Virus record (IMG/VR): IMGVR_UViG_3300046787_000200
Coordinates: 186,001-250,000 of that record
DNA: 64,000 nucleotides
Reading direction: 5' to 3' (one strand)
This document shows, piece by piece, positions 411 to 37,771 of the stretch. Position 1 is the first letter of the stretch; every line of letters starts with the position of its first letter. A model generated the notes under the pieces. The model did not search any database. It was given only the letters and a program-made list of their open reading frames with translations, and was not told where the DNA came from. The translations under genes were made by a program, and so were the position numbers.

Positions 411-2621
411 ATGGACTTAAAAGAATTAGACTCGTTTAAAATGTCGGATGCGATAACATTCCACGATAAACTTAATCCAAAGTTATTTCGTGGCACTCAC
501 CTACAATCTGATGTATCAGATCAATTAAAAGTTATAGCACAAGATTTCTTAGAAGAATTAGGAATTAAAGGTTTAGATGTTAAAGACATAACTATATCCG
601 GATCTAATGCGGCATATAGTTATACACCTAACAGCGATTTAGACTTACACATATTAGTTGATTTAAGTCAGTATCCAGACGATGAGATATACCAAGAGTT
701 ATTTCACGCTAAAAAGACAATATACAATGATTCACACAATATCAAAGTTCACGGAATTCCAGTAGAATTATATGTGCAAGATAGCAACGAACCTGTAATA
801 AGTTTAGGTGAGTATAGTATATTAAAAGACAAGTGGCTTAGAATTCCTACTAAACGTAGAAGTAATTTAGACCAAACTGCTACTAAACAGAAATACGAAA
901 AGTTATTGAAGCTAGCAGAATATGCGTTAAAGTCAAAGAAATTAAGTAAAGTAAAACAAATATTACAAACTATCAAACGTTATCGTCAAGCTGGACTAGA
1001 TAAAGGTGGAGAGTTTGGTCCTGAGAATCTAGCATTCAAGGCATTACGTAGTCAAGGTATTATTACTAAATTGTATGATTTGCGTGACAAATTACATAGT
1101 CAACATTTGAGTATTGAGAGTATGTATTCTAATGATGTTGATGAAGATTATCATCCAAATGGTAAGCCACCTGGACCTGAGTTTAAACCCACAATGCCAG
1201 CCGGCACTGTTAGAGTAGATGTATCAGATGTATATGATTGGTATAAGTTAGGTCAAAACATCAGTGACCTTGGTAGAGCAGATCCTAATATGTTTGGTAA
1301 AGGACCTCCTAGCACTATTATGTCATTTGGGGACGAAGATACTGAACACAAATATATCAATGACTTAGAGAAGACTGGATTAACTACAACTGACATTGAC
1401 CCAGTTGATCCTAAGCAACCTAAAGGTATGAAGCGTCAGAAGACTGACCCTACTTACAATGTGTCGGAACAAGAAACAATGCAATATGCTGCCGAAAAGA
1501 TACCGGCAACTAATCCATATGGTGGTCTTAAAGATAGACAGTATCGTGGTAGTATATCAGAAATAAGAAAAAATCCAGAACAAAATCTTAAGTCAGAATC
1601 TGGTATGAAAGAATTAGCAAGTATTGCTAAGACTATTAGTGATCCAGAAAACTGGGCTATCAGTATGACCAGTGAACCCAAGTTAGGTATCAACCCACAA
1701 GTAGGTATTAGCGAAGACACCCCTAAAGGCATTTACTTCTATCCATTGAACTATGCATTAGGTAAGACACGCTATGGAAAATTGCCTTGGGGAAATGACT
1801 ATCCCTATATTCAGTTGTTTCAATATGATCGTTCACGTGAAATGACTAAACAAACAAAAGTTGACCCTGCTAAATTAAAACAAGCATTGCTTCAATATTG
1901 TCCTGAAGAAGTAATACAGCAAGCAATTGACGATCCAGAATACGACGGAACACCATACTGGTTCATTTACGATTGTTTAAGCAGACTAGGACAAAACGAC
2001 GAAACTAATATTGTTCGTTGGAATAAAATATTGCGTGATTTAGGCTTTACTAGCGTGTATGATGATGGTGATGGTTGGATTGCTTACAACGAACCAACAC
2101 AAGGTGTTGTATTAGATCCAAGAGTTATTAAACAACACAAGACTATTGTTAATAAGAAGCAATCAGGAGTAGTTACACCTGCCGCAATTGAACAGGCTAT
2201 ATTTGACACACTTGATATAGAGTTAGCCGCTAATAGAGCGTGGCAAGCATATGACCCAGACGGCAGTAAACTCAGATCGGCAGCCAAGGAATATGCCAAG
2301 GATCCTAAATTCAAACCATATTATGGAAAGCCAGGAACAGAAGAAATATTTAATAAAGCAGAAGGCTGGGGCAGGTATGGTGCAAGACAATTATCAGATA
2401 TTGCATACGAATGGTATAAACAACAACAAAGTCAGTCAAAAGTCAATGAAGCAAGTGGATATATCCCGAGCAACGCACAGAAAAATGACCCTAGATTCAA
2501 GACTGCATTAACAGTAGATGTTAAGCCTGATAGTATCAAAAAGAACGCAAAAGCATTTGCTTGGTTGACTGATAGGGCCGGCATTCCTCCCGCAGCCAAA
2601 GCAAACGGCAAAATCTCTTAA
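411..2621 (+). CDS. Pol-beta-superfamily nucleotidyltransferase fused to several additional modules
   Basis: SGSNAAYSYTPNSDLDLHILVD (GS + DxD) and VELYVQD; further blocks after Glu-ending linkers (VDE, VSE, ISE, VNE). Confidence 0.7.
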   Translation: MDLKELDSFKMSDAITFHDKLNPKLFRGTHLQSDVSDQLKVIAQDFLEELGIKGLDVKDITISGSNAAYSYTPNSDLDLHILVDLSQYPDDEIYQELFHAKKTIYNDSHNIKVHGIPVELYVQDSNEPVISLGEYSILKDKWLRIPTKRRSNLDQTATKQKYEKLLKLAEYALKSKKLSKVKQILQTIKRYRQAGLDKGGEFGPENLAFKALRSQGIITKLYDLRDKLHSQHLSIESMYSNDVDEDYHPNGKPPGPEFKPTMPAGTVRVDVSDVYDWYKLGQNISDLGRADPNMFGKGPPSTIMSFGDEDTEHKYINDLEKTGLTTTDIDPVDPKQPKGMKRQKTDPTYNVSEQETMQYAAEKIPATNPYGGLKDRQYRGSISEIRKNPEQNLKSESGMKELASIAKTISDPENWAISMTSEPKLGINPQVGISEDTPKGIYFYPLNYALGKTRYGKLPWGNDYPYIQLFQYDRSREMTKQTKVDPAKLKQALLQYCPEEVIQQAIDDPEYDGTPYWFIYDCLSRLGQNDETNIVRWNKILRDLGFTSVYDDGDGWIAYNEPTQGVVLDPRVIKQHKTIVNKKQSGVVTPAAIEQAIFDTLDIELAANRAWQAYDPDGSKLRSAAKEYAKDPKFKPYYGKPGTEEIFNKAEGWGRYGARQLSDIAYEWYKQQQSQSKVNEASGYIPSNAQKNDPRFKTALTVDVKPDSIKKNAKAFAWLTDRAGIPPAAKANGKIS

Positions 2622-2671: not shown

Positions 2672-4183
2672 ATGAAAATCAGTCAAATTATACAAGAAAC
2701 AACAACGTCAGGGTCAGTAGCACCTGTAGAATTAGGGTTTGTTAAAATGCAAACACGTAATCCAAGTGTATACGGTGACACTAAAGCAGGCAACTTACTA
2801 AAAGGTAAGAAAACAAATAAGCCATTTGCTAATAGCGTAAATGAGTCTAAAATGAAAGATTTAGCTTACGATATGGAAACAATGAAGCCTGCTGAGTTTC
2901 AAAAGAAGTATGGTAAAAGCAGAGAACAAATGAAGGCTTCTCCTATCAATAAGCCTGCTCAACCACAAAAACCAACTCCACTAGTCAACGAAGCTGACTT
3001 ACAAGAAGATGATGTAATATTAGTTCCTGGTCAGGGAAGAAAAACAAAGACTGGTTTTGTACCTCACGGAGAAAGTCGTGTAGACCACGAAGTAGAAATG
3101 GCTGTCAGCGATTTGTTCAGTGCAGGTAAGAATGCTGAGAAAATCTATAACATCGTAAGAAGTATCAGTGAAGAAGAAGGTCTTGAAGGCTGGGTACAAG
3201 AGAAGATTATTAAAGCTAATGACTATCTAAACACAGTCCGTGAATACTTAGAAGGTAAACAAGTTCAAGGTATGGCGGAAGGCTTGAATGATACTGTATA
3301 TCCTAACGCAGAAGTAATCAAAAGTAAAAATGGTAAGCCAGTTGGTGAGATATATCAAGATGGCAATAGTTGGGGTGCTTTTCACTATCGAGCAGACCGT
3401 GGATATGATATGATTGACAGTAGGGAAGATGCGATAGAAGCATTGAAAGATTTACATCAAGAAACAGGTCGCAGTCGTCCAGACTATACTATAAAAGGTG
3501 TGGCGGAAGGCTTACCACAGACTCTACGCAAAGTTGTTCCCGGACACGCCAAGCGTGAAATTGATAAGAAGATGGATGCTGGAAAATTTGGCAAAACTGA
3601 TGCTGATAAAGATGCTAACTTCCAACGCTACAAAAAGATTCAAGACAAGTTAAAAGAGCAAGGTGTGGAAGAAGGCTTTGGATTGAGGGGCACCGGTAAT
3701 CCAGGTATGCCAACTCCATATGACCAAGGACGAGCAGATGCCAAAAAAGGTCGTCCATATGACAATCCATATGACCAGCCAGGCGAAGAACAAGAACATA
3801 GAAACTATCGTAAAGGCTATGAGCAGGGTAAAGAGCAAGGTGTGGCGGAAGGCGCGGAACAAGTTTACAAGGTATTGGCTGTTGACAAGAGCAACGCATT
3901 GTCCAAACAAGTGAAGTTAAAGGTAAAAGCCAGTTCATTAGATGAAGTGTTTGAACGATTGGCAATCAATGATTGGTATCCTTTAGAAATCAACGGTGTA
4001 GAAGTAATCAACGGCAAGCGCCTAAAGCAAGGTGTGGCGGAAGGTGCTAAAGTAGATCGTATGGTTAAGCACATTGAAAAGTCTGAAAAGAAATTAGGCA
4101 AGTCTGAAAAAGAAGCAGAGAACATTGCTTGGGCTACAGCTAACAAACGTGGTATGTTAGATAACAAGAATAAGAAAGCGTAA
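2672..4183 (+). CDS. Modular polyprotein with QGVAEG-delimited cassettes, probable internal head protein
   Basis: Leader MKISQIIQE; five in-frame (Q/K)G(V/M)(A/E)EG linkers between unrelated segments. Confidence 0.75.
   Translation: MKISQIIQETTTSGSVAPVELGFVKMQTRNPSVYGDTKAGNLLKGKKTNKPFANSVNESKMKDLAYDMETMKPAEFQKKYGKSREQMKASPINKPAQPQKPTPLVNEADLQEDDVILVPGQGRKTKTGFVPHGESRVDHEVEMAVSDLFSAGKNAEKIYNIVRSISEEEGLEGWVQEKIIKANDYLNTVREYLEGKQVQGMAEGLNDTVYPNAEVIKSKNGKPVGEIYQDGNSWGAFHYRADRGYDMIDSREDAIEALKDLHQETGRSRPDYTIKGVAEGLPQTLRKVVPGHAKREIDKKMDAGKFGKTDADKDANFQRYKKIQDKLKEQGVEEGFGLRGTGNPGMPTPYDQGRADAKKGRPYDNPYDQPGEEQEHRNYRKGYEQGKEQGVAEGAEQVYKVLAVDKSNALSKQVKLKVKASSLDEVFERLAINDWYPLEINGVEVINGKRLKQGVAEGAKVDRMVKHIEKSEKKLGKSEKEAENIAWATANKRGMLDNKNKKA
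3266..4044 (+). repeat. Array of five 17-bp direct repeats, consensus CAAGGTGTGGCGGAAGG
   Basis: Copies start at 3266, 3494, 3659, 3836, 4028; periods 228, 165, 177, 192 nt, all multiples of 3. Confidence 0.95.
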
Positions 4184-4184
4184 T

Positions 4185-7100
4185 ATGAGCAGTATTCTAA
4201 AAGGTTTAAACGAATCCAATTCAGTATATGGACATAGTGATCCAGATAGAGAATACGGTGCACCTGCAACGTCATACAGTAAACGTGGTCCTTATTCACA
4301 CACAGATGATGACGATGATGGTAATCCATTCGCTGAATATGAACGTCAGCAAAGAATGTTTGCTGTTGGTCGTGCTGAGAAGGCTGCAAGAGAAAAAGCA
4401 CAGCGTGATAGTGACCACGATAGATTAGCAACCGGTACTAATGAAGAACAACTTGACGAACTATCAAATGAGAAGCTAGGTCAATATAAAACAGCCGCCG
4501 CTGCCGATGCAGGTAAAGCTGATTTAGCCGGTGACTATAAGAAAGCCGATAAACGTTTTAGTGGTATCGTAAAAGCGACTAAGAAACAGTTTGCTAATGA
4601 TGCTAAAACTGTCAAAGAAGATATTAATGCAGTATATAAAGAAGCTAAATCATTACTTACTCAATTAGATGAATCTACACAGCAACAAGTTATCAATGCT
4701 CTAAAAAAGAATGTGGATGCTGAAAAAGATAAACAAAAGAGCAAATATCCAAGACTTGATAATCCTAAAATTTTAGGAACAAATAATAAAGCTAAATCAA
4801 TATACTATCCACCAAGCAAACCTAATGTAAAGAAGTTAGATAAGCCATTACCAGAAAGCTTGGGTGATCAGCTTAAATCTAAATCATTAGATGCATTGCA
4901 ACAAGTTAAACAAAATATCGAACAAAAACGTATGGCTGATTTAGAGCAGTGGGAAAAAGATTTCAAACAAAATACTGTTTCTAAGTTTACAGCAAGACAA
5001 CCAAGTTTTATGCAACAACCTAAGCAAGTTGCAAGACCACTAGAGAAGCATTCAGTATTGAAAGCAAGATTAGCACAACTTGATAAAGCTATTGAGAAGC
5101 AAGCTGTATTAGACAAGATGTTGCAACGCCTTGATGCTAAAGGTCTATTAACACCTGCAATACAATCTGATACAGATACAAGTATGTTAGTGCGTGATGG
5201 TGCAAATGATAATTATGTTTCATTAAATCAGAAGTTGGACAAAGCATTAGAGTTCGTTAAGAACAGATTAATGACTAACAAAACCGCTTTTGCTAAACCA
5301 AAAGCGATTGATGAAAATGAAGAACTAGATGAAAATCTACACAAGTGGTTCAAAGAGAAGTGGGTTCGTTTCGGTCCAGATGGTAAGATTCGCGGTGACT
5401 GCGCTAGAGGTGATGATAGTGAAGGTAAACCAAAATGCTTACCACAAAGTAAAGCACATAGTCTAGGCAAGAAGGGTCGTGCTAGTGCGGCAAGTCGTAA
5501 GCGTAGAGAAGATCCTAATCCAGAGCGTAGTGGCAAGGCTATCAATGTCAATACTAAGAAAAATAGTAATGAAAGTGTGGTCCTTGGGCGAGATGAAGGT
5601 AACTTTGTAAGTGATACACCAGTCAATCTAGGTGGTGTAGTAGTTAAGAATTTAGGTATCGGTGATATTGTAAGTTACTTCGGACAAAAAGCAAAAATAA
5701 TTGCTATGTCTAAAACAGGAAATACATCTCGCATTACAATACCAAGTGGTATGGGTGGTGTTACTAAAGATGTTCTTACTAAAGATTTGAAACGCACAAG
5801 TTTATCTGAGGAAGAGTTAGACGAAGCCTGTTGGAAAGGTTATCACAAAGAGGGTAACAAGAAAATGTTTGGCAATCCATATCCTAACTGTGTAAAGAAT
5901 ACTAACGAAGAATTAGATATGACAGAAGGCTGGAAAGAAGAAGCACAAGATTTAGAAGACTGGTCTAAAGAAGTCAACATGAGACTGTACAGAGCGCATG
6001 AGAGTCAGCGCCCTGCACTAGCAAGACAACTAAGCAAATTAGAACAAAAACACTTTGGTAGTGAATTTACACATCCAAACTTAACTAATGTAGTTTGGTC
6101 AGCATTACGAGCATTACAAAAAGGTGAGATGGTTCACTATGATCCACAACGTGTAGGTCAAATGCCATTTGGTAATATAGTAGGTGATGATGCTAAAATC
6201 ATTGCACAGTATAATATAACTCGTGATGAACTTGCCGGTTATCGTATGTTACACGATAAAGGTATGGTAGATAATCTTGAACAATTTTTAAAGTTACGCC
6301 GTTTAGTACGTGCAAAATCATGGCCACTAGAGTATTATGAAGAATTAGAGAAGTTATCAACAGAAGAAGCATGGTTAAAAATGGCCAATGATTTGAATTG
6401 GTCCAAAGATGATATGAACGAATCAGTTCAAGCCAAAACTGATGACAACTTACGAGCATACTACGCACAACGTAAAGCAGAAAAAGAAAAGCAACATAGC
6501 GAAAGTTGCCCACATTGCGGTGGCGAAATGGTTAGTGAAGAACTAATGAATGAAAAGAAAGATGCTTGCTACTATAAAGTAAAGAGCCGTTACAAGGTAT
6601 GGCCAAGTGCTTATGCTAGTGGTGCGTTAGTTAAGTGCCGTAAGAAGGGCGCAAGCAACTGGGGCAACGGTGGTAAGAGTAATGAAAGTGTTGCGGAAGA
6701 CGATGCCGGTGATGTTGAACAGCGTATGATTGCTAAAATAGAAAAAGAAAAACAGCGTCTAGCAAAACTAAAGCAGACAGATCCAGAAGCATACAAGCGT
6801 GAAATAGAAAAGCGTAAAACTTCATCTAGAGTTCCTCCTGTGTCTACATTTGAAGATCAAGGTGTGGCGGAAGGGCCTGGTTTTGATAAATGGGCAGATG
6901 ATAGAGCGGCATCACAACTACACAAACTAAAACCCGGGATGGTTCAAGACCGCAAGACCGGCAAGTGGTATGATCCTAACAAAGAGTTTGACAAGAAGAT
7001 GAACAGTCCTGAAGTCATGGCTCAAATGAAGCGTATGGCACAGAAAGAAAGCATCGAAGAAGACCAACTTGATGAAAAGTGGACTAAGAAATACAAAGAT

Positions 7101-7199
7101 AGCATCAACTGTAGTAATCCAAAAGGCTTTAGTCAAAAAGCACATTGTGCTGGTAAACAGAAAAATGAAAGTGCAATATTGAAAGGGCTTAAATTATGA
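4185..7199 (+). CDS. 1004-aa modular polyprotein, probable internal head protein
   Basis: Short basic or Cys-containing modules separated by LDE/NES/MNE/VAE linkers; one exact 17-bp repeat. Confidence 0.7.
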   Translation: MSSILKGLNESNSVYGHSDPDREYGAPATSYSKRGPYSHTDDDDDGNPFAEYERQQRMFAVGRAEKAAREKAQRDSDHDRLATGTNEEQLDELSNEKLGQYKTAAAADAGKADLAGDYKKADKRFSGIVKATKKQFANDAKTVKEDINAVYKEAKSLLTQLDESTQQQVINALKKNVDAEKDKQKSKYPRLDNPKILGTNNKAKSIYYPPSKPNVKKLDKPLPESLGDQLKSKSLDALQQVKQNIEQKRMADLEQWEKDFKQNTVSKFTARQPSFMQQPKQVARPLEKHSVLKARLAQLDKAIEKQAVLDKMLQRLDAKGLLTPAIQSDTDTSMLVRDGANDNYVSLNQKLDKALEFVKNRLMTNKTAFAKPKAIDENEELDENLHKWFKEKWVRFGPDGKIRGDCARGDDSEGKPKCLPQSKAHSLGKKGRASAASRKRREDPNPERSGKAINVNTKKNSNESVVLGRDEGNFVSDTPVNLGGVVVKNLGIGDIVSYFGQKAKIIAMSKTGNTSRITIPSGMGGVTKDVLTKDLKRTSLSEEELDEACWKGYHKEGNKKMFGNPYPNCVKNTNEELDMTEGWKEEAQDLEDWSKEVNMRLYRAHESQRPALARQLSKLEQKHFGSEFTHPNLTNVVWSALRALQKGEMVHYDPQRVGQMPFGNIVGDDAKIIAQYNITRDELAGYRMLHDKGMVDNLEQFLKLRRLVRAKSWPLEYYEELEKLSTEEAWLKMANDLNWSKDDMNESVQAKTDDNLRAYYAQRKAEKEKQHSESCPHCGGEMVSEELMNEKKDACYYKVKSRYKVWPSAYASGALVKCRKKGASNWGNGGKSNESVAEDDAGDVEQRMIAKIEKEKQRLAKLKQTDPEAYKREIEKRKTSSRVPPVSTFEDQGVAEGPGFDKWADDRAASQLHKLKPGMVQDRKTGKWYDPNKEFDKKMNSPEVMAQMKRMAQKESIEEDQLDEKWTKKYKDSINCSNPKGFSQKAHCAGKQKNESAILKGLKL
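6858..6874 (+). repeat. Sixth copy of the 17-bp repeat, exact consensus
   Basis: CAAGGTGTGGCGGAAGG, in frame as QGVAEG. Confidence 0.95.
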
Positions 7200-8375: not shown

Positions 8376-8428
8376 TCAATTTATAAAAGATAGATTTGTT
8401 GATAAATACTATGATATAGAGGCATATT

Positions 8429-8869
8429 ATGTTATCGGACAATTTAAAAGTATTATTAGCAAGTACACAAAGTTTTGCAATCAAGTCACAGAACTTCCAT
8501 TGGAATGTTGAAGGTAGTAACTTTCCCCAATACCATGAATTTTTTGATACACTATACAGTGACATAAGTGGTACCATTGATCGTATAGCTGAATACATCA
8601 GAATACTAGGTCACTACACACCTGGTAGCTTAAAACGCTACTCAGAACTAAGTGTCATTGAAGACCAAATAAAAATTCCACGTGCTGAATTAATGTTTGC
8701 TGAATCATTACAAGACTGTGAAACAATGCTTCAGTTAGTAACCGCAATGTTTGATGAAGCGGCAGACGAAAAGCAACACGGTATAGAAAACTATATGGCT
8801 GAATTACAAGATTTGTACGGCAAGAAAGCTTGGTTCATTCGTTCAGTATTGAAGAAAGAACGTGAATGA
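8429..8869 (+). CDS. dps: Dps/ferritin-like DNA protection protein
   Basis: NFHWNVEG..F..YHEFF and D.IAE.IR.LG ferroxidase signatures; TAAATA at 8403. Confidence 0.9.
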   Translation: MLSDNLKVLLASTQSFAIKSQNFHWNVEGSNFPQYHEFFDTLYSDISGTIDRIAEYIRILGHYTPGSLKRYSELSVIEDQIKIPRAELMFAESLQDCETMLQLVTAMFDEAADEKQHGIENYMAELQDLYGKKAWFIRSVLKKERE

Positions 8870-9735
8870 GAGCAAATGAATTTTTAATTGAACGTGCAAC
8901 TAGTGTAGTGTTTCATTACACCGGTACTAATGCCGCATTAAAGATTCTAAAATCAGGTAACTTTGAATTAGCAAGCACAACAGGTAATCGTAGCGAAGAA
9001 CAATATGCACCAAAAGGTTATCCATACTTCTTAAGCTTAACACGCACACCAACTGGTGATTATCATAGATATGTTGGTACAGGTGGCGTTATGTTTAAGA
9101 TTGACGGTGATTGGCTAAACAATAGATATGTTGTAAAGCCAATAGACTATTGGGATCGTGCTTGGTTACATAGTGATGGTACACGTTCACGTGAATCAGA
9201 AGATAGATTGTTTAGTAAACAACCCACAGTTCCAGTTACACCTGTAACAGAAGTTCACGTATTGTTAAAAGAACAAGATGAGTTTCGTAGTCCACAAACA
9301 CGACAAATAATGATATCCGCTAAACAAAGAGGTATCCCGGTATATCTTTATACCGATGAGAAAGCTTGGAGACTATTAGATACACGTAAGAGTATTCAAC
9401 CAAGCCAAGCTAAAGATGTATTAAAAGGTCAACAAGGTCCTGGCTACAGTCGTAAGCCAACTGATTTTGTTAAACCCTGGATTGAGTTGATTGAAAAGGA
9501 TCGTGAAGAATATCTAAGCGATAGAGCTAAAAGACAACTAAAGAACTTATTATGGTATCCTGATGCGTCCGGAGATCATAACATAGGTGTAGATTTATCT
9601 AACGCACGTAAGCCAGACGCAGGAGATAGAGCGAGTGCCGTGAAGTTGATTAAATATATGAACGACAATAATATTAAGAATACAGTAGAACTTAAAAACG
9701 CTATTGTCGATAAATGGAATAAGATAAAAAAATGA
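8866..9735 (+). CDS. Putative ADP-ribosyltransferase-fold protein with capsid-targeting-like leader
   Basis: MRANEFLIE; FHYT ... LSLTR ... ESEDR (H-S-ExE arrangement). Confidence 0.5.
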   Translation: MRANEFLIERATSVVFHYTGTNAALKILKSGNFELASTTGNRSEEQYAPKGYPYFLSLTRTPTGDYHRYVGTGGVMFKIDGDWLNNRYVVKPIDYWDRAWLHSDGTRSRESEDRLFSKQPTVPVTPVTEVHVLLKEQDEFRSPQTRQIMISAKQRGIPVYLYTDEKAWRLLDTRKSIQPSQAKDVLKGQQGPGYSRKPTDFVKPWIELIEKDREEYLSDRAKRQLKNLLWYPDASGDHNIGVDLSNARKPDAGDRASAVKLIKYMNDNNIKNTVELKNAIVDKWNKIKK

Positions 9736-10604
9736 GATTAGTTGAGTTTGTTACTGAAGCCGTCGGAGGTGATTACATTTATCATAGTGTAGCACAGCCT
9801 AACCAGATCTGGAACATACTTAGAAAAGGTGTAATACAACCACAAATATCTGAAACAGATGAAGAAGGTGGTTGGGAGATACCAGTTATCAGTGCAAGTA
9901 GAAGTCAATATTATAGATACCCATATGGTGGTGGTAGTATTCAACTTGTTTTAGATAGAAATGCATTACGTCAAGCCGGTTTCAAAGTATTGCCATTCTC
10001 TTATATGCAGTTTTACAATCAAGCTGATGGCAGTGGCCCTACAGCAAGTAATCCAATGTATAAACAAGAAACAGAAGAACGTATCTATCATCCAAAAGGT
10101 ATAGGTATTCCTGTTAAGAAACCATATGTCGTGGGTATACAGATACGTAAAGAGCTAATGGATAAAGTTCCAGAAGGTCTATTGAAGTTGATTAGTGATG
10201 CTGGATTAACATTAACACCAATGAAAGATGATCCTACTAACAGAGAAAAGTTTTCACGTAAGTTAGCTAAACCACCATTGAATCCGGCACACTATTACAA
10301 ACCAAATGAAGTTCAAATAGTAGCAAGGCGAGACAATCCAAATGGATATACATTATGGAGTGTTAAACCTGATGGCTACATCTTGCCGATTGGTGATACC
10401 GGTGAGTTTAATAAGGGCGGTTTGACAAAACAAAAAGCAATAGATGCATTTAAGAGACTTACCGGTGCCAATCCAAAAGAAGTTCAAAACGTTATTAAAT
10501 ATGATGGTACGTTTAACCCAAATTATTACCACGATGAATCCGGCGGTCCAAGCAGAGAACTATACAACTGGGTTCCTCAGATAGTAAATAGTAATACACA
10601 ATGA
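9732..10604 (+). CDS. Second putative ADP-ribosyltransferase-fold protein with capsid-targeting-like leader
   Basis: MRLVEFVTE; IYHS ... ISASRS ... ETEERI. Confidence 0.5.
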   Translation: MRLVEFVTEAVGGDYIYHSVAQPNQIWNILRKGVIQPQISETDEEGGWEIPVISASRSQYYRYPYGGGSIQLVLDRNALRQAGFKVLPFSYMQFYNQADGSGPTASNPMYKQETEERIYHPKGIGIPVKKPYVVGIQIRKELMDKVPEGLLKLISDAGLTLTPMKDDPTNREKFSRKLAKPPLNPAHYYKPNEVQIVARRDNPNGYTLWSVKPDGYILPIGDTGEFNKGGLTKQKAIDAFKRLTGANPKEVQNVIKYDGTFNPNYYHDESGGPSRELYNWVPQIVNSNTQ

Positions 10605-10614
10605 GATATTTAAA

Positions 10615-12993
10615 ATGAGAGCATTAGACTTTATATTAGAAAATACAGAGGTACTTGACGAAGTAGCGATGAATCCTACTCGTTTAAAGCAAGAAGCTGC
10701 CAAGACTGGTGCTCAAGCTGGTATGGAATTCGAAATGATTGTTCCAAACGTTAAATCAGAGGACGTAGATAACGATCCAGAACCAGACTATGATAGTGAT
10801 GAATCTGCACGTGATATAGATGATATAGCTAGGTTCTTTCGTGACGGCGAATATAACAGTCGTAGACAAATAGATGAGTTAGTAGACCAACTACGTGATG
10901 GTTACTATGAGTGGGCTGACGAACAACGTAGCGAACAATGGGATCGTGAAGGAAAAGATTATTTACGTGAATACATTGAAAATGAAGGCGAGTTTGATGA
11001 AGATGCTGCCTTAGATGAAGCTTATGACCAATTAGGTTTTACTGATGAACAAAAAGAAGCGGCAAGTAAAGCCGGTGCAACAATAACAAAACGCTCAGAT
11101 GCAGTAGGTAATGAAGATTGGGAGCATTGGAAAGAAGCACAAGATTTAGTTGGCGAAAAGTTAGACCAGTTTGTTGAAGAACAATGGGATGAGAGAGGTC
11201 GCCTATACGACAATGCATATGAAAAGTGGACTGATGAAGCTGATTGGCCTGATGAAAGTGATTGGTTAGACAGTCAAAACCTTCAGACAATGCAAGACAT
11301 TGAAAGTAACTATGATGTTACTTGGCCACATTGGCAATATCCTGATTCAGGTGGCGAATTGAGTATTGACGATGTTGCTGATGAGTTCAGCAGAATGATC
11401 GGTAAGCCAATCAATTCAAGTGAGCGTTATCACGGTGCTCGTAGAGAAGCAGGCCATTATGTTGTTGAACCTGATGGTAGCTTAGAACCAGATGATAGTG
11501 ATGATGCTGGATTAGAGTTTGTAAGCCCACCAATGCCCATAGATGAAATGTTAAGTGACTTCAATAAAGTTGTTGCTTGGGCAAAAAGTAAAGGTTGCTA
11601 TACTAATGATAGTACTGGATTGCACATAAATGTAAGCGTACCTGATTTTAGTAGAGATAAACTTGACTATGTTAAGTTAGCAATATTATTAGGTGATGAG
11701 TATGTTCTAAAAGAGTTTGGTCGTGAAGGTAATACTTACACTAAGAGCGCATTGAAACGAGTTAAAGATAACATTAGAAGTCGCCCAGAAGATGCCAAAC
11801 GTTTGTTAGACAGTATGAAGGCAGGCTTAAATGATATTGCTAGTAAAGCTGTTCATAGCGGTGCTACAGACAAATATACAAGTATCAACACTAAAGATGG
11901 TTATATTGAGTTTCGTAGTCCCGGTGGTGATTGGTTAGATGCTGATATCCCTAAGATTGAGAATACATTGTTACGATTTGTTGTAGCATTAGATGCCGCA
12001 GTTGATCCACAGAAGTATAGAAAAGAATATCTAACAAAGCTTTATAAGTTGTTGTCACCGAGCAAAGACGCTACTGATACTATTCAATACTTTACTAAGT
12101 ATGCCGCAGGTGAGTTACCAAAGGCTGCATTACGTAGCTTTGTTAAACAAGCACAGTTAGAACGTAAGATTAAATCTGATAAAGAACAAGGTAAGAAGTA
12201 TTGGTGGCGTGTTGATAAAGAAGGTCAAGGACGTTCTGGTGCAAGCTTAGAAGTTGTTGCTACAAGTAAAGAAGAAGCATTAGAAAAAGCAGCCAGTGAA
12301 TGGAATATTCGTTTAGGTGCATTGACACAAGCTGATGCTTATCCTATTCGTAAGTTTGAAGAACCTGCAAGCAATACACCAAGATATGAAATCTTCAACT
12401 TGAATACAAACAATAGTGTAGAAGATGCTGAAGGAATTACCAATGATAGAGACGCATTGATTCGATTAAATGATTATTTACAACATGGTCCACATAGATT
12501 ATCGGCTGATCAGGCTAGAAATACATTTGGAATTAGACGTGTAGGTGATAGTGAACCTATACTAGCACAACCAATTAGTCGAGGTGGTAATGAACCACAG
12601 TCAAGGTTTGAAATCTATCGTATCAGTGACGGTCGATCATTAACAAGACGAGGAGAACCATTACAAATCGTTGCTAATGGTGTTGAGGGTGCTGAACGTC
12701 AGATGATAGAAATAATACGCAGTCTCGATTTTGGCGCACCTGAACTATTTGCAGTTCGTAGTGTAATAGAACCTCCGGCGCAGCCGGGCAGCACAACTGA
12801 CATACAACAACAACGTGCGGCAGGTGGTGCATTCACTGGTGCTTGGAAAGTATTAGCTGATGGACGTGAAGTATATCGTTTCAGTGGCGTAGGCAATCAA
12901 CAAAGTGATGCTAATCGTGTAGCTATTCAATGGCTAAGAAACAACGGGTACGATCAAAGTACCGAAGTTGAAGTTGTACCTATAATGAGCTAA
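10615..12993 (+). CDS. Putative amidoligase (COOH-NH2 ligase family) with acidic insert and C-terminal repeated domains
   Basis: GMEFE, EPDGSL, GLEFVSPP, STGLHINVS, YIEFRSPGG; leader MRALDFILE. Confidence 0.8.
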   Translation: MRALDFILENTEVLDEVAMNPTRLKQEAAKTGAQAGMEFEMIVPNVKSEDVDNDPEPDYDSDESARDIDDIARFFRDGEYNSRRQIDELVDQLRDGYYEWADEQRSEQWDREGKDYLREYIENEGEFDEDAALDEAYDQLGFTDEQKEAASKAGATITKRSDAVGNEDWEHWKEAQDLVGEKLDQFVEEQWDERGRLYDNAYEKWTDEADWPDESDWLDSQNLQTMQDIESNYDVTWPHWQYPDSGGELSIDDVADEFSRMIGKPINSSERYHGARREAGHYVVEPDGSLEPDDSDDAGLEFVSPPMPIDEMLSDFNKVVAWAKSKGCYTNDSTGLHINVSVPDFSRDKLDYVKLAILLGDEYVLKEFGREGNTYTKSALKRVKDNIRSRPEDAKRLLDSMKAGLNDIASKAVHSGATDKYTSINTKDGYIEFRSPGGDWLDADIPKIENTLLRFVVALDAAVDPQKYRKEYLTKLYKLLSPSKDATDTIQYFTKYAAGELPKAALRSFVKQAQLERKIKSDKEQGKKYWWRVDKEGQGRSGASLEVVATSKEEALEKAASEWNIRLGALTQADAYPIRKFEEPASNTPRYEIFNLNTNNSVEDAEGITNDRDALIRLNDYLQHGPHRLSADQARNTFGIRRVGDSEPILAQPISRGGNEPQSRFEIYRISDGRSLTRRGEPLQIVANGVEGAERQMIEIIRSLDFGAPELFAVRSVIEPPAQPGSTTDIQQQRAAGGAFTGAWKVLADGREVYRFSGVGNQQSDANRVAIQWLRNNGYDQSTEVEVVPIMS

Positions 12994-12994
12994 T

Positions 12995-13861
12995 ATGAGA
13001 GCAACAGATTTCATAATCGAACAAGAAAATCCTAAAGTAGATTTGACACCTAACTATCCTAACTATCAAGTATTAGTAGGTGAGTATGTTGGTGTAAAGA
13101 AGAATAGATTACTATTCAAAATACTTTCAGCAGAACTAAAGCCAGGACAAGGTGCAACAGATAAGATTGTTAAATCATTAGCAACTGGATTACCATTTGG
13201 TATTGATATTGAACGTGTTAGAAATCGTAAAGTATTAGAAGATTTAACTCGTAGGGGCTTCTTAGGTGGATTAGGCGCAGCCGCATTAGGTGCCACAGGA
13301 GTAGCACAAGCTAAACCAACACAGCCTGCACAACAAAAATCTGAGCCAGTTAATATGTTGAGTAATCATCCTCAACACGAAGCACTATTGCAACGTGCGG
13401 CTAAAGCTGCCGGCATTAAAGGCACGGAGTTAGCACAGTTCATGGCACAAACCAACCATGAATCATGGGACTTTAGTAGATTAAAAGAAAAAGGTATGGG
13501 TAAAGGTTACTTTGCTAAAAAGTATGACCCTAAGTTTGCCCCACAGACAGCTAAGATATTAGGCAATAAACAAGTAGGTGACGGGGAGAAGTATCGCGGT
13601 AGAGGATTCATTCAATTGACAGGACGTGATAATTATCGTATGGCACAACAAGCATTAAAGATACCGTTGTTACAACAGCCCGAGTTAGCAGAGCGTCCAG
13701 ATGTTGCGGCAAAGATTGCTGTATGGTATTGGAATACACGAGTTAAGCCCCATATACAAAACTTTAACGACACTAAAGCAGTAACGCAAAAGATTAATCC
13801 AGCAATGCGTGGCTTACAAGATAGACACGCAAAGTTTATTGATTACAAGAATATTTTATAA
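12995..13861 (+). CDS. GH19 lysozyme/chitinase-family hydrolase with leader and internal twin-arginine segment
   Basis: FMAQTNHES and YRGRGFIQLTGRDNY; MRATDFIIE; TRRGFLGG at residue ~85. Confidence 0.85.
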   Translation: MRATDFIIEQENPKVDLTPNYPNYQVLVGEYVGVKKNRLLFKILSAELKPGQGATDKIVKSLATGLPFGIDIERVRNRKVLEDLTRRGFLGGLGAAALGATGVAQAKPTQPAQQKSEPVNMLSNHPQHEALLQRAAKAAGIKGTELAQFMAQTNHESWDFSRLKEKGMGKGYFAKKYDPKFAPQTAKILGNKQVGDGEKYRGRGFIQLTGRDNYRMAQQALKIPLLQQPELAERPDVAAKIAVWYWNTRVKPHIQNFNDTKAVTQKINPAMRGLQDRHAKFIDYKNIL

Positions 13862-13871
13862 AGAGAGTTAG

Positions 13872-14309
13872 ATGAGAAAAATAATAACAATAGCATTACT
13901 AGCAATATCAACAGTTGCGTTCGCACAAAAACAAAAGCCAATGAATATCTATGATTTCCCAATCACCAGAGTTATTGACGGCGATACAGTAGCGTTTCAA
14001 GCACCGTTCTTACCACCACCATTAAAGCAAGAGTTAAGTATACGTGTATTTGGTGTTGATACACCTGAAAAGGGTCATAGAGCAATGTGTCCACAAGAAG
14101 ACCAACGTGGTCAGGCAGCTACTGCATTTACAAAAAATGCAATTACCAAGGCACAAAAACGTCAAGTAGCTATTGCTGATTGGGATAAATATGGCGGTCG
14201 TGTTTTGGGTGACGTATTATTAGATGGACAAAGTTTAAGAATGATGTTAATACAGAACGGATTTGCAAGAGAATATTACGGAGAAGCTAAGACTTCTTGG
14301 TGTAATTAA
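13872..14309 (+). CDS. Thermonuclease (SNase-like) with signal peptide
   Basis: RVIDGDT, IRVFGVDTPE, DKYGGRVLG; hydrophobic N-terminus ending AFA. Confidence 0.9.
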   Translation: MRKIITIALLAISTVAFAQKQKPMNIYDFPITRVIDGDTVAFQAPFLPPPLKQELSIRVFGVDTPEKGHRAMCPQEDQRGQAATAFTKNAITKAQKRQVAIADWDKYGGRVLGDVLLDGQSLRMMLIQNGFAREYYGEAKTSWCN

Positions 14310-14647: not shown

Positions 14648-15220
14648 ATGCGATTTAATCAGATACTATCAGAATCCGCTGCCACTGAACTAGCTAAAAA
14701 ATTGCCTAGTTTAGAAAAGCATAATTACAATACCATTGACAAATTAATGCGTGGTATTGCGAAGAAGCACAGCATTACCGGCAAAGCTTTACATGATTTA
14801 TTCATACGAAAATATCATAGAAGCCCTGATAGTTGGATTAAAAATAAACTAGATGAAACTGGGGATAGTGAGTTACAGCAAGAAGTTGATAAATTTGCTG
14901 AATGGGCAAGTAGTAAATTACACTTGCAACAAGTCCCCAAAATTGAACTAAGTATGGATACAGAAGAGGCTCAGAATAATCATCACACCGGCGGACATAA
15001 AATGGGTGATGATAAGATTTGGGTCTATGTCAACAACCGCAACTTAGTAGATATATTACGAACAGTATTCCATGAATTAGTTCATGTACGCCAAGGTGAA
15101 CTAAATATGATTGAACCAGGCGATAGCTATCCCGGTAGTCCAATCGAAGCAATGGCGGATATGCTAGCTGGTAAATATATCAAAATATATGGTGAGCAAA
15201 ATCATCATATATTTCAATAA
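14648..15220 (+). CDS. Zincin-like (HExxH) metallopeptidase-domain protein with capsid-targeting-like leader
   Basis: MRFNQILSE; RTVFHELVH ... E. Confidence 0.65.
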   Translation: MRFNQILSESAATELAKKLPSLEKHNYNTIDKLMRGIAKKHSITGKALHDLFIRKYHRSPDSWIKNKLDETGDSELQQEVDKFAEWASSKLHLQQVPKIELSMDTEEAQNNHHTGGHKMGDDKIWVYVNNRNLVDILRTVFHELVHVRQGELNMIEPGDSYPGSPIEAMADMLAGKYIKIYGEQNHHIFQ

Positions 15221-37342: not shown

Positions 37343-37771
37343 TTATAATTGATTACGTTTCTTAGCTAAGAACTGTTCAGCAATCATCACCAACTCTTGC
37401 ATTTGCTCAATACTCTCACAGTTCCATCTACGCAAACTCTTGTTAATGTTACTATTTGGATCTCTCGCTGTCTTGGCGCTAGTTCTGCTTTTCTTCATGC
37501 CCTTCATTCTAGCACAGAATGATTTACGGCGTTTAGCGGCTTTACTGCCCTTTTTAAGTTTGCTAGGTTTAGTAGTAACAGCAGTTTGAATCTTGCTACC
37601 AGGATGACTACGACGGTAGCTGGCTACACTCTTTTTACTCATGCCACCAACTCGTTTGTTATTATGCTTTGACCAATTTTCGCCTTCTTCTACATGCTCA
37701 CACTCACATGGATTTTTTCCACAATGTGGACACATGTTGCTTGATTCAGTTAAAATTTCACTTATTCTCAT
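37343..37771 (-). CDS. Basic protein with capsid-targeting-like leader and CPHCG knuckle
   Basis: MRISEILTE; RRKSFCARM...INKSLRRWNC; minus-strand TAAATA at 37828-37833. Confidence 0.75.
   Translation of the reverse strand: MRISEILTESSNMCPHCGKNPCECEHVEEGENWSKHNNKRVGGMSKKSVASYRRSHPGSKIQTAVTTKPSKLKKGSKAAKRRKSFCARMKGMKKSRTSAKTARDPNSNINKSLRRWNCESIEQMQELVMIAEQFLAKKRNQL

Follow-up and report, generated by a model that had tools for sequence, protein, structure and literature searches.

The 1004-residue product of a single open reading frame in a 352-kb T4-like giant phage is a string of about a dozen small interchangeable modules joined at conserved Glu-ended junctions that fit the cleavage rule of the T4 prohead protease. 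The protein is most likely packed into the phage head, cut into pieces there and injected with the DNA, although cleavage is inferred rather than shown and the module functions are unknown. The ORF, hereafter P0001, occupies positions 4185–7199 (+ strand) of a 64,000-nt window that covers positions 186,001–250,000 of IMG/VR record IMGVR_UViG_3300046787_000200.

Modular organization of P0001

P0001 has an ATG start, which lies 1 nt after the stop of the upstream gene, and a stop codon. A preliminary description of the sequence reported a 1004-residue string of basic and Cys-containing units separated by acidic linkers, each unit beginning directly after LDE, NE, TE or AE, and these observations are confirmed with one exception. 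LSNEKLGQY follows LDE92, NLHKWFKEKWV follows LDE383, SVVLG follows SNE465, ACWKGY follows LDE547, GWKEE follows MTE581, KKDACYY follows MNE790, GPGFDKW follows VAE896 and KWTKKYKDSINC follows LDE964, whereas CPHCGG follows HSES rather than a Glu. The N-terminus MSSILKGL and the C-terminus SAILKGL(KL) match, as described. The protein contains 10 Cys in five pairs and has a pI of 9.1; most predicted pieces have pI 9–10, and the linkers are acidic.

The ORF begins with a 10-residue leader, MSSILKGLNE (4185–4214), followed by an acidic N-terminal region (4215–4460, residues 11–92, pI 4.7) that is always N-terminal where present and ends in EEQLDE. The first module, LSNEKLGQY… (4461–4619, residues 93–145, pI 9.6), matches phrog_26930. 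Residues 164–377 (4674–5315) form one or two helical basic modules ending in AIDE. Module A, NLHKWFKEKWV…CX11C… (5334–5579, residues 384–465), follows the linker NEELDE, ends in SNE and matches phrog_23735. A Gly/Val-rich module (5580–5810, residues 466–542), found at other positions in homologues, precedes module B, ACWKGY…PNCVK (5826–5927, residues 548–581), which follows EELDE. The largest module (5928–6485, residues 582–767) is helical, with near-neutral pI and unknown function. Module C, CPHCGG plus KKDACYYKVKSRYKVWPSAYASGALVKC (6486–6698, residues 768–838), matches phrog_727 and phrog_3477 and is 73% identical to the cyanophage virion protein S-SM1 gp115. A helical charged module (6699–6872, residues 839–896) ends in QGVAE; this end and the next residue are encoded by a 17-nt junction, CAAGGTGTGGCGGAAGG (6858–6874, QGVAE|G). 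The module GPGFDKW… (6873–7061, residues 897–959) is followed by the linker DQLDE, module D, KWTKKYKDSINC..PKGFSQKAHC (7077–7169, residues 965–995), and a C-terminal tail, SAILKGLKL (7170–7196), which repeats the leader peptide after KNE.

The preliminary description had proposed as a test whether the units recur in other proteins and other orders, and they do: modules are rearranged, duplicated, lost and encoded as separate genes in other phages. More than 1600 metagenome proteins of 557–1530 aa carry them in different orders, as do the cyanophage proteins S-PRM1 704 aa, Bellamy gp123 and the 'gp114' proteins. Modules also occur in thousands of stand-alone proteins of 40–120 aa; 196 and 1964 small proteins carry module D or module C, respectively, alone or in pairs. 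No module of P0001 has a paralogue elsewhere in the genome. DNA similarity to other contigs starts and stops at the junctions, with matches at 4458–4606, 5320–5580, 5817–5910, 6501–6689 and 7074–7170.

Homology and structure searches gave no indication of function. Pfam searches with the whole protein and with nine separate pieces returned nothing above cut-off, the best hit being DUF5872 on module C (E 0.011), and PHROGs matched only families of unknown function. A near-identity DNA search of cultured phages found no match. An AlphaFold2 model of residues 582–767 built from 18 sequences had a pLDDT of 60, with only a helical part of about 70 residues confident; Foldseek against the PDB found nothing with E below 3, and a feature-based ESM Atlas search with the same residues returned only unnamed viral clusters with scores below 0.8. 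A model of residues 384–838 from a three-row alignment had a pLDDT of 39.5 and is unusable. Even the claim that the modules fold on their own thus rests on sequence evidence alone. Read data, complex prediction and large profile searches were not used in this analysis.

Junction motifs and the 17-nt element

The plain count of [LIVM]xE in P0001 is not above chance (17, against 14.3 in shuffled sequences; p 0.24). What exceeds chance is where these sites lie and how well they are kept. First, 59% of alignment breakpoints with 119 homologues fall within 6 residues of such a site, compared with 19% for random positions (highest of 2000 trials, 24%). If the sites are placed on random Glu residues, however, the figure is 42% (p 0.07); the link is only marginally better than for Glu in general, so an acidic flexible linker explains much of the pattern. 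Second, Glu at P1 and an aliphatic residue at P3 are kept before modules A, B, D and LSNEKL whatever lies upstream. In 120 small proteins with module D, the residue two before the Trp (P1) is Glu in 118 and the residue four before it (P3) is L/I/V/M/F in 117. This corresponds to the cleavage rule of T4 gp21, which cuts after Glu, for example at ITE-6 and LTE-619 in Alt and in the capsid targeting sequence (CTS) at residues 8 and 10 (PMC5694885, PMC9026906); in T4, a change of the Glu to Asp blocks processing but not targeting. Where the cyanophage gene is split, the internal junction AVLE|GNKSGDSS of S-SM1 becomes the gene start MATNEIIE|KNKSGDSS in P-RSM4. The frequent (S/K)NE|S boundaries, by contrast, lack an aliphatic P3.

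The 17-mer at 6858 is real, with 8 more copies with up to 3 mismatches, all on the + strand within 183.8–192.9 kb of the record and nowhere else in the 352 kb. The preliminary description took it to be a fresh junction among older, eroded ones, which is not supported. The LDE junctions are a separate type, kept at the peptide level with free synonymous variation, so they are not decayed copies of the 17-mer. Nor is the 17-mer fresh: it is exact in at least 120 viral contigs, where it stands in 259 different 47-nt contexts, while the cassettes it bounds have drifted to 70–93% identity. It is an ancient junction, kept letter for letter in hundreds of unrelated contexts, at which DNA cassettes begin and end, and 161 of 162 exact 17-mers are in frame in long ORFs. 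Internal Shine-Dalgarno or RNA-structure roles were considered but not pursued in depth; the flanks are random beyond −5 and +14, so there is no conserved pairing partner. The nucleotide-level conservation is unexplained and is the most novel part of this system.

Leader peptides and genomic context

The genome is T4-like. It encodes Gp23 (E 1e-99), which groups with the PA5oct/Vibrio 2.275.O capsid lineage, and a gp21-type prohead protease (Peptidase_S77, PF03420; E 9e-28, 94.8 bits). Between them lies a scaffold gene whose 366-aa product has 28 [LIVM]xE sites, by far the highest density in the genome (7.7 per 100 aa, against a mean of 1.6, SD 1.1). P0001 lies about 185 kb from this head gene cluster, next to Dps, nuclease and replication genes, which counts against the capsid-internal reading set out below.

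The small stand-alone proteins start with a 9–11-aa leader, M(K/R)xxE(F/I/V)(I/V)xE, such as MRASEFIAE, MKIAEVVLE or MRANEFMTE, directly followed by the module; the modal leader is 9 aa with consensus M-(R/K)-x-x-E-(I/V/F)-(I/V)-x-E. These leaders resemble the CTS MKTYQEFIAE at the start of T4 IPII and IPIII. The leader of P0001 itself does not resemble this sequence apart from its length and its LxE end, with L8 and E10 at the T4 CTS processing positions (PMC9026906). It is nevertheless conserved: MS(K/N/S)ILKG(L/I)..NE heads about 100 of 119 long homologues, and the same first module is headed by MKPSDFLTE in two others. Of the long homologues, 95% have [LIVMF]xE ending at residues 6–13, compared with 15% of all ORFs in the genome. 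The tail peptide ends about 17 homologues, and internal copies are flanked by NE| and DE|.

P0001 sits among at least seven genes with CTS-like leaders. Ten of 451 ORFs in the genome start with the CTS-like pattern, against 0.09 expected, and six of them lie in the 14 kb around P0001 (p 3e-7). The upstream partner gene, P0121 (2672–4183, +, 503 aa), is a second protein of the same build, with the leader MKISQIIQE and five QGVAEG-type junctions (17-mers at 3266, 3494, 3659, 3836 and 4028); a tblastn search with P0121 found no match in cultured phages. Downstream, at 8866–13861 (+), are four consecutive genes with the leaders MRANEFLIE (289 aa), MRLVEFVTE (290 aa), MRALDFILE (792 aa, amidoligase) and MRATDFIIE (288 aa, glycoside hydrolase 19). 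A 190-aa gene at 14648–15220 (+) has the leader MRFNQILSE, and its homologue in a 356-kb relative starts MKTYQIVLE. Further away, a 142-aa gene at 37343–37771 (−) combines the leader MRISEILTE with CPHCG and a DUF6321 module, the C-terminal module of cyanophage T4-GC119 proteins. The exact T4 late promoter, TATAAATA, is not near P0001. A related ATAAATAC(TA) motif is, but at window level its count is not above chance. TAAATACTA (2645–2653, +), a motif like the T4 late promoter, lies 19 nt before the P0121 start; this evidence is weak.

A putative capsid-internal polyprotein

We consider it more likely than not that P0001 is a capsid-internal (ejected) polyprotein. In this view, the leader, and perhaps its internal and C-terminal repeats, would take the precursor into the scaffolding core of the prohead, where the gp21-type protease would cut after Glu in exposed aliphatic-x-Glu sites within the acidic linkers (LNE10, LDE92, LDE383, LDE547, MTE581, MNE790, VAE838, VAE896, LDE964 and possibly the (S/K)NE|S sites). 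The short acidic linker peptides would leave the head, whereas about ten to twelve small, mostly basic, Cys-pair modules would stay with the packaged DNA and enter the host with it, acting there like T4 internal proteins in charge neutralization and/or counter-defense. The genes evolve by cassette exchange at the junctions. The analysis shows the modular build and its permutation, the conserved junction motifs, the leaders and the presence of gp21, gp22 and gp23 in the same genome, and virion detection of a cyanophage relative is on record; that this protein is packaged, that it is cleaved, and what the pieces do are inferences. The virion evidence comes from S-SM1 gp115 (T4-GC119), which shares modules C (73% identity, E 2e-19), A (E 2e-10) and B (E 2e-6) with P0001 by BLASTP and is listed as a structural protein with 13 peptides in purified S-SM1 virions (PMC3037559, Table S8). 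No proteomic or biochemical data exist for the phage studied here, neither packaging nor cleavage has been observed, and T4-GC119 was not detected in Syn9 virions although the gene is present. The interpretation in the preliminary description, a second polyprotein yielding a dozen or more DNA-binding or effector peptides, is partly supported: the modular build, the conserved junctions and the similar upstream gene bear it out, but no fold, family or assay supports DNA binding or effector activity.

Of the alternatives, an uncleaved multi-domain protein of the 'polyvalent' type, in the virion or ejected, survives best but appears unlikely. The modules would then remain on one chain as beads on a string, with the LDE stretches serving only as flexible linkers and helix caps. 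The chance-level count of [LIVM]xE and the tracking of breakpoints with acidic linkers in general are consistent with this, virion detection of the cyanophage relative says nothing about cleavage, polyvalent proteins with 2–15 domains are common in phages (PMC5512222), and some homologues carry a ParBc domain (PF02195). However, the P3 and P1 residues before module D are kept behind leaders of quite different sequence, internal junctions turn into gene-start leaders when genes split, leader-like peptides inside homologues are flanked by Glu sites on both sides, and the genome has a gp21 protease and a scaffold rich in such sites. Much less likely is an unpackaged, intracellular string of small basic domains that coats or organizes phage or host DNA during infection. 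The neighboring Dps/ferritin-like DNA-binding protein, nuclease and, further on, DNA polymerase, and the basic character of the protein, would fit this reading, but the conserved LxE-ended leaders, the cluster of CTS-like leaders on neighboring genes, the virion detection of the cyanophage relative and, weakly, the late-promoter-like motif speak against it. Similarly improbable is an accretion of self-spreading junction elements and their cargo without joint function, which would suit the cassette borders, the synonymous-site conservation of the 17-mer and the variation in gene length from 276 to 2985 nt among 16 cyanophages, but not the reading frame kept through all junctions, the gene position and leader conserved in relatives, or the conservation of the modules as proteins.

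More tentatively, the 17-mer may be an in-frame recombination junction, kept at the nucleotide level because cassette exchange needs its identity, that also encodes the protease site (V-A-E|G) later separating the products of the cassettes. Aquatic T4-like phages would thus assemble and reshuffle packaged effector polyproteins from a shared pool of hundreds of modules, a kind of exon shuffling or integron inside an open reading frame.

T4 internal proteins are the textbook case of proteins injected with phage DNA, and one of them, IPI, is a counter-defense factor, but until now they looked like a small peculiarity of the T-even phages. These results suggest that the same targeting-and-cleavage device serves very large families of small proteins in marine and freshwater T4-like phages, including the abundant cyanomyoviruses, that jumbo phages string these proteins into polyproteins, and that a single letter-perfect junction element marks the cassette borders. 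If so, thousands of 'hypothetical' small phage proteins gain a testable location inside the head and a delivery route by injection, a simple sequence rule (leader plus aliphatic-x-Glu) could predict ejected proteins from metagenomes, and the junction would be a natural system of in-frame module shuffling. In the literature searched, no paper links the CTS to cyanophage small proteins, none mentions DUF6321, and QGVAEG has no relevant mention.

Relationship to known systems

The closest systems are the T4 internal proteins IPI, IPII and IPIII and Alt. These share a short N-terminal leader ending in (L/I)xE, basic products, a hypervariable locus and the gp21, gp22 and gp23 background, and stand-alone modules and a neighboring-gene homologue carry leaders nearly identical to the T4 CTS (MRASEFIAE and MKTYQIVLE, compared with MKTYQEFIAE). 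However, T4 internal proteins are single small proteins cut once, and Alt is cut at both ends, whereas P0001 joins about 12 modules in one precursor with about 10–17 candidate internal sites. Its leader is a different sequence type that is repeated inside homologues and at the C-terminus, and there is no sequence similarity to IPI–III beyond the leader.

The cyanomyovirus T4-GC119 or 'gp114' proteins, such as S-SM1 gp115, a virion structural protein of unknown role, share modules A, B and C (and D in S-PRM1, S-CAM9 and Bellamy gp122), Glu-ended junctions and variable order and length; the module motifs DWF..GW, KDACY..WPSAYASGALVKC and CWxGY occur on one chain in P0001 as well. They differ in ending with a DUF6321 module, which is absent from P0001, and in lacking the MSxILKGL leader, the N-terminal 380 residues and the 17-nt QGVAEG junction. 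S-SM1, S-CAM9, Bellamy and S-PRM1 are in culture collections. Sullivan et al. treated the gene only as a hypothetical protein within a mobile cassette, and no CTS or polyprotein reading of it was found in the literature searched.

Polyvalent proteins of phages and conjugative elements (Iyer, Burroughs, Anand, de Souza and Aravind 2017) likewise place many unrelated domains with highly variable content on one chain, delivered with the DNA and proposed to be released by proteolysis. Those proteins are defined by enzymatic and anti-restriction domains and usually by their own zincin-like peptidase (MPTase), whereas P0001 has no Pfam domain, only a few of its homologues carry ParBc or other domains, and release would depend on the prohead protease. 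The absence of a peptidase family also separates P0001 from classical viral polyproteins, which carry their own protease. The inner-body or ejection proteins of phiKZ, 201phi2-1 and SPN3US are giant-phage head proteins cut at several sites after Glu by a gp21-related protease, with propeptides holding redundant sites. However, their motif is (S/A/G)xE, whereas the junction P3 here is L/I/V/M, there is no sequence relation, they lose propeptides rather than being split into a dozen independent modules, and the capsid protein of this phage does not group with phiKZ. Finally, the PeSL-type mobile cassettes of T4-type phages (Arbiol et al. 2010) are likewise flanked by short conserved DNA elements thought to drive modular shuffling in hyperplastic regions, but PeSLs are intergenic promoter/stem-loop elements, whereas the 17-mer is in frame, lies inside ORFs and encodes a likely protease site.

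Gene structure and genome of origin

The window corresponds to bases 186001–250000 of a 352,012-bp virus record that CheckV rates as complete. The ORF at 4185–7199 on the + strand encodes a protein of 1004 residues, P0001 (no alternative genetic code was used, and no reads were analyzed). The observation in the preliminary description is confirmed: every unit that it quoted is present, and each follows a Glu-ended stretch, with the one exception of CPHCGG, which follows HSES. The two ends of the protein do share the peptide S(S/A)ILKGL. P0001 has a pI of 9.1 and ten Cys residues in five local pairs, and cutting at every [LIVM]xE generates mostly basic pieces (pI 9–10) separated by 5–6-residue acidic peptides such as EELDE and DQLDE. 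Although the bare number of [LIVM]xE sites is at chance level (17 against 14.3, p 0.24), the signal lies in where these sites sit and how well they are conserved.

The genome contains a T4-family major capsid protein (PF07068, E 1e-99) and a gp21-family prohead protease (PF03420, 94.8 bits), with a scaffold-like gene between them. The scaffold (G000 4562–5662, - strand, where G000 denotes whole-genome coordinates) has 28 [LIVM]xE sites in 366 residues, the highest density in the genome (7.7 per 100 aa against 1.6 ± 1.1), as expected for a core protein that is chopped up by a T4-type protease. This gp22-like protein ends in IKRLAGL and contains LVAEG, whereas P0001 ends in ILKGLKL; the resemblance is faint and was not tested. 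The closest cultured capsid proteins are those of Vibrio phage 2.275.O (349 kb) and the Pseudomonas PA5oct group, at 66% identity.

Modules are rearranged among homologues

Pfam searches identify nothing in P0001 or in its pieces, and PHROGs identifies six families of unknown function, each matching one stretch. A tblastn search against cultured phages hits 367 records, nearly all of them cyanomyoviruses, and always only through single modules. The proteins of S-PRM1 (704 aa) and Bellamy (gp123, 618 aa), and the ‘gp114’ proteins of S-RIM8, S-CAM22, and S-CAM9, are strings of the same modules in other orders, and in Bellamy the last module is a separate 51-aa gene. In metagenomes, more than 1600 proteins of 557–1530 aa match, and blocks of P0001 (residues 1–87, 83–145, 198–382, 379–465, 470–537, 538–576, 579–767, 768–838, and 955–1003) appear in many different orders. 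The preliminary description had proposed that its reading would fail if the modules were never found rearranged; they are rearranged, and the reading survives this test.

Alignment breakpoints pile up at residues 83–92, 141–148, 376–383, 463–470, 537–547, 572–582, 765–768, 835–839, 890, and 955–964. Of these breakpoints, 59% lie within 6 residues of a [LIVM]xE site, compared to 19% for random positions. However, the figure is 42% when the sites are placed on random Glu residues (p 0.07), and the acidic linkers as such therefore carry much of this signal.

Junctions and leaders resemble T4 processing and targeting sequences

In the long homologues, the residues preceding module A (NLHKW), module B (ACWKGY), module D (the last module), and the LSNEKL module are (E/D/Q)xLDE, or VDE, IDE, VAE, LKE, or LNE, whatever module lies upstream. 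Searches with modules D and C (the CPHCGG module) alone, as required by the length window of the word search, found 196 and 1964 small proteins, respectively. In 120 small proteins with module D, the residue two before the Trp is Glu in 118, and the residue four before it is L/I/V/M/F in 117. T4 gp21 and its giant-phage relatives all cut after Glu in a short motif, such as ITE-6 and LTE-619 in Alt and LIE-9 in gp21 (PMC5694885, PMC9026906).

T4 IPII and IPIII begin MKTYQEFIAE (NC_000866). This 10-residue capsid targeting sequence (CTS) is enough for packaging, with residues 4 and 7 important for targeting and residues 8 and 10 for processing (PMC9026906). The small module-D and module-C proteins begin with MRASEFIAE, MRAQEFVTE, MKIAEVVLE, MRANEFMTE, and the like, directly followed by the module; the modal leader has 9 residues, with consensus M-(R/K)-x-x-E-(I/V/F)-(I/V)-x-E. 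P0001 has a different leader, MSSILKGLNE, but with L at position 8 and E at position 10, and it is conserved at the N-terminus of about 100 of 119 long homologues. Two homologues carry MKPSDFLTE before the same first module, so the two leader types are interchangeable. The leader peptide recurs inside homologues as KNE|SSILEGIE(R/Q)ADE|, with Glu sites on both sides, and also at the C-terminus, as in P0001. Where the cyanophage gene is split in two (P-RSM4 genes 119 and 120), the internal junction AVLE|GNKSGDSS of S-SM1 corresponds to the gene start MATNEIIE|KNKSGDSS.

A conserved locus of leader-bearing genes

Ten of the 451 ORFs of 80 aa or more in the genome start with the CTS-like pattern, against 0.09 expected from shuffles, and six of them lie in the 14 kb around P0001 (hypergeometric p 3e-7). 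The leader-bearing genes start at window positions 2672 (P0121, the 503-aa upstream protein, leader MKISQIIQE), 8866 (289 aa, MRANEFLIE), 9732 (290 aa, MRLVEFVTE), 10615 (a 792-aa amidoligase, PF12224, MRALDFILE), 12995 (a 288-aa glycoside hydrolase 19/lysozyme-like protein, MRATDFIIE), and 14648 (190 aa, MRFNQILSE). The five genes at 8866–13861 and 14648–15220 have T4-CTS-like leaders of the form MRxxEF(I/V)xE, and the two with recognizable enzyme domains are candidate packaged and injected enzymes. A further gene of this kind, at 37343–37771 (-), codes for 142 aa with leader MRISEILTE, a CPHCG zinc-ribbon-like start, and a DUF6321 module (E 2e-11), which in cyanophages is the C-terminal module of the T4-GC119 proteins but here is a separate gene. 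Two adjacent small genes (133 and 122 aa; leaders MRAKEFIVE and MRATEFVFE) form a second small cluster far from the window, at G000 102342–103108.

In relatives fetched by protein identity, the homologue of P0001 (713–1068 aa) always follows a P0121-like gene with leader MKINQI..E and precedes the ferritin/Dps gene. The 190-aa gene of a 356-kb relative starts MKTYQIVLE, sharing its first five residues with the T4 CTS. A Dps/ferritin-like protein (8429–8869; PF00210, E 7e-19) and a staphylococcal nuclease homologue with a signal-peptide-like start (13872–14309; PF00565, E 4e-12) are conserved neighbors of the P0001 homologue in relatives, and the block between these two genes is missing or replaced there. 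P0001 therefore sits in a conserved locus of leader-bearing genes whose content varies.

Upstream, window 411–2621 codes for a 736-aa protein with a weak N-terminal nucleotidyltransferase match (PF01909, E 0.007; phrog_36119, E 1e-40) and a long unknown C-terminal part, preceded by a terminator-like hairpin (about 362–380) and the TAAATACTA motif at 401. All three window copies of TAAATACTA (401–409, 2645–2653, and 8403–8411) lie just before genes 411, 2672, and 8429, and genome-wide ATAAATAC(TA) occurs 38 times, 28 of them with an ORF start within 45 nt downstream. It resembles the T4 late promoter, TATAAATA. DnaJ-like (266 aa) and ClpA/B-like AAA+ (758 aa) chaperone genes lie a few kb upstream of the leader-gene locus (G000 178876–181976; positions 10876–13976 of the upstream stretch L004), and the ClpB-like gene is also upstream in a 126-kb relative (L135).

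A virion-borne relative

S-SM1 gp115 (T4-GC119) shares three modules with P0001: module C (73% over 51 aa, E 2e-19), module A (E 2e-10), and module B (E 2e-6). Table S8 of Sullivan et al. 2010 (PMC3037559) lists T4-GC119 as a structural protein with 13 peptides in purified S-SM1 virions; it was absent from S-PM2, and in Syn9 it was present in the genome but undetected in virions. Gene lengths range from 276 to 2985 nt among 16 cyanophages. The same table lists the cyanophage cytidylyltransferase (T4-GC190) as a virion protein in S-SM1. The 714-aa protein just upstream of the window (L004 15249–17393; G000 183249–185393) starts with a cytidylyltransferase-like domain (E 2e-5) followed by modules joined by three QGVAE-type junctions (QGLAE, QGVKE, and QGVAE), although this is a lead only, as it was not compared with T4-GC190.

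Two types of junction

The 17-nt junction CAAGGTGTGGCGGAAGG (QGVAE|G) at 6858 has four exact copies in the genome and five more with 1–3 mismatches. All nine are in frame on the + strand, in three proteins between G000 183.8 and 192.9 kb (window 3266, 3494, 3659, 3836, 4028, and 6858; G000 183834, 184092, and 184410), and none lies elsewhere in the genome. All differences among the nine copies change the amino acid; none is synonymous. The exact 17-mer occurs in at least 120 IMG/VR contigs. In these loci, 161 of 162 copies are in frame within ORFs of 100 codons or more, and the motif stands in 259 different 47-nt contexts, whose flanks are random beyond -5 and +14. The contigs carrying it (loci L007–L126 and L133–L136) have 30–52% G+C, plus one at 66% that may be a chance match.

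The junction is kept at synonymous sites in hundreds of unrelated contexts, and it uses the rare GTG and GCG codons. In the same ORFs, GTG makes up 17% of Val codons and GCG 7% of Ala codons; GGT-GTG-GCG-GAA is therefore expected in about 0.4% of GVAE peptides, yet in four loci chosen by protein and not by the motif it is used in 14 of 18. DNA similarity between the window and other contigs starts and ends at these junctions (3266–3512 in three loci, 3495–3616, 3830–4045 at 92.6%, and 4040–4188), whereas in P0001 it starts and ends at the LDE linkers. The cassettes themselves are only 70–93% identical. The LDE junctions show free synonymous variation, and the cyanophage genes examined lack the 17-mer. 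So there are two junction types, one conserved as a peptide and the other also conserved as DNA; the latter conservation is unexplained, and our best guess is identity-dependent cassette exchange.

Interpretation and comparison with known systems

The interpretation offered in the preliminary description, that P0001 is a polyprotein, is partly supported, being well motivated but unproven. The analysis itself demonstrates the module mosaic, the conserved junctions and leaders, the matching protease in the genome, and a virion-borne relative, whereas packaging, cleavage, and the role of the pieces are inferences. No description of such a system was found in the literature searched. The nearest known systems are the T4 internal proteins with their CTS, the cyanophage T4-GC119 structural protein, polyvalent proteins (PMC5512222), and the multiply cleaved inner-body proteins of phiKZ-like phages. 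P0001 differs from each of these in that it joins about a dozen internal-protein-like modules in one precursor, repeats its leader peptide, and belongs to a cassette system with a letter-perfect in-frame junction.
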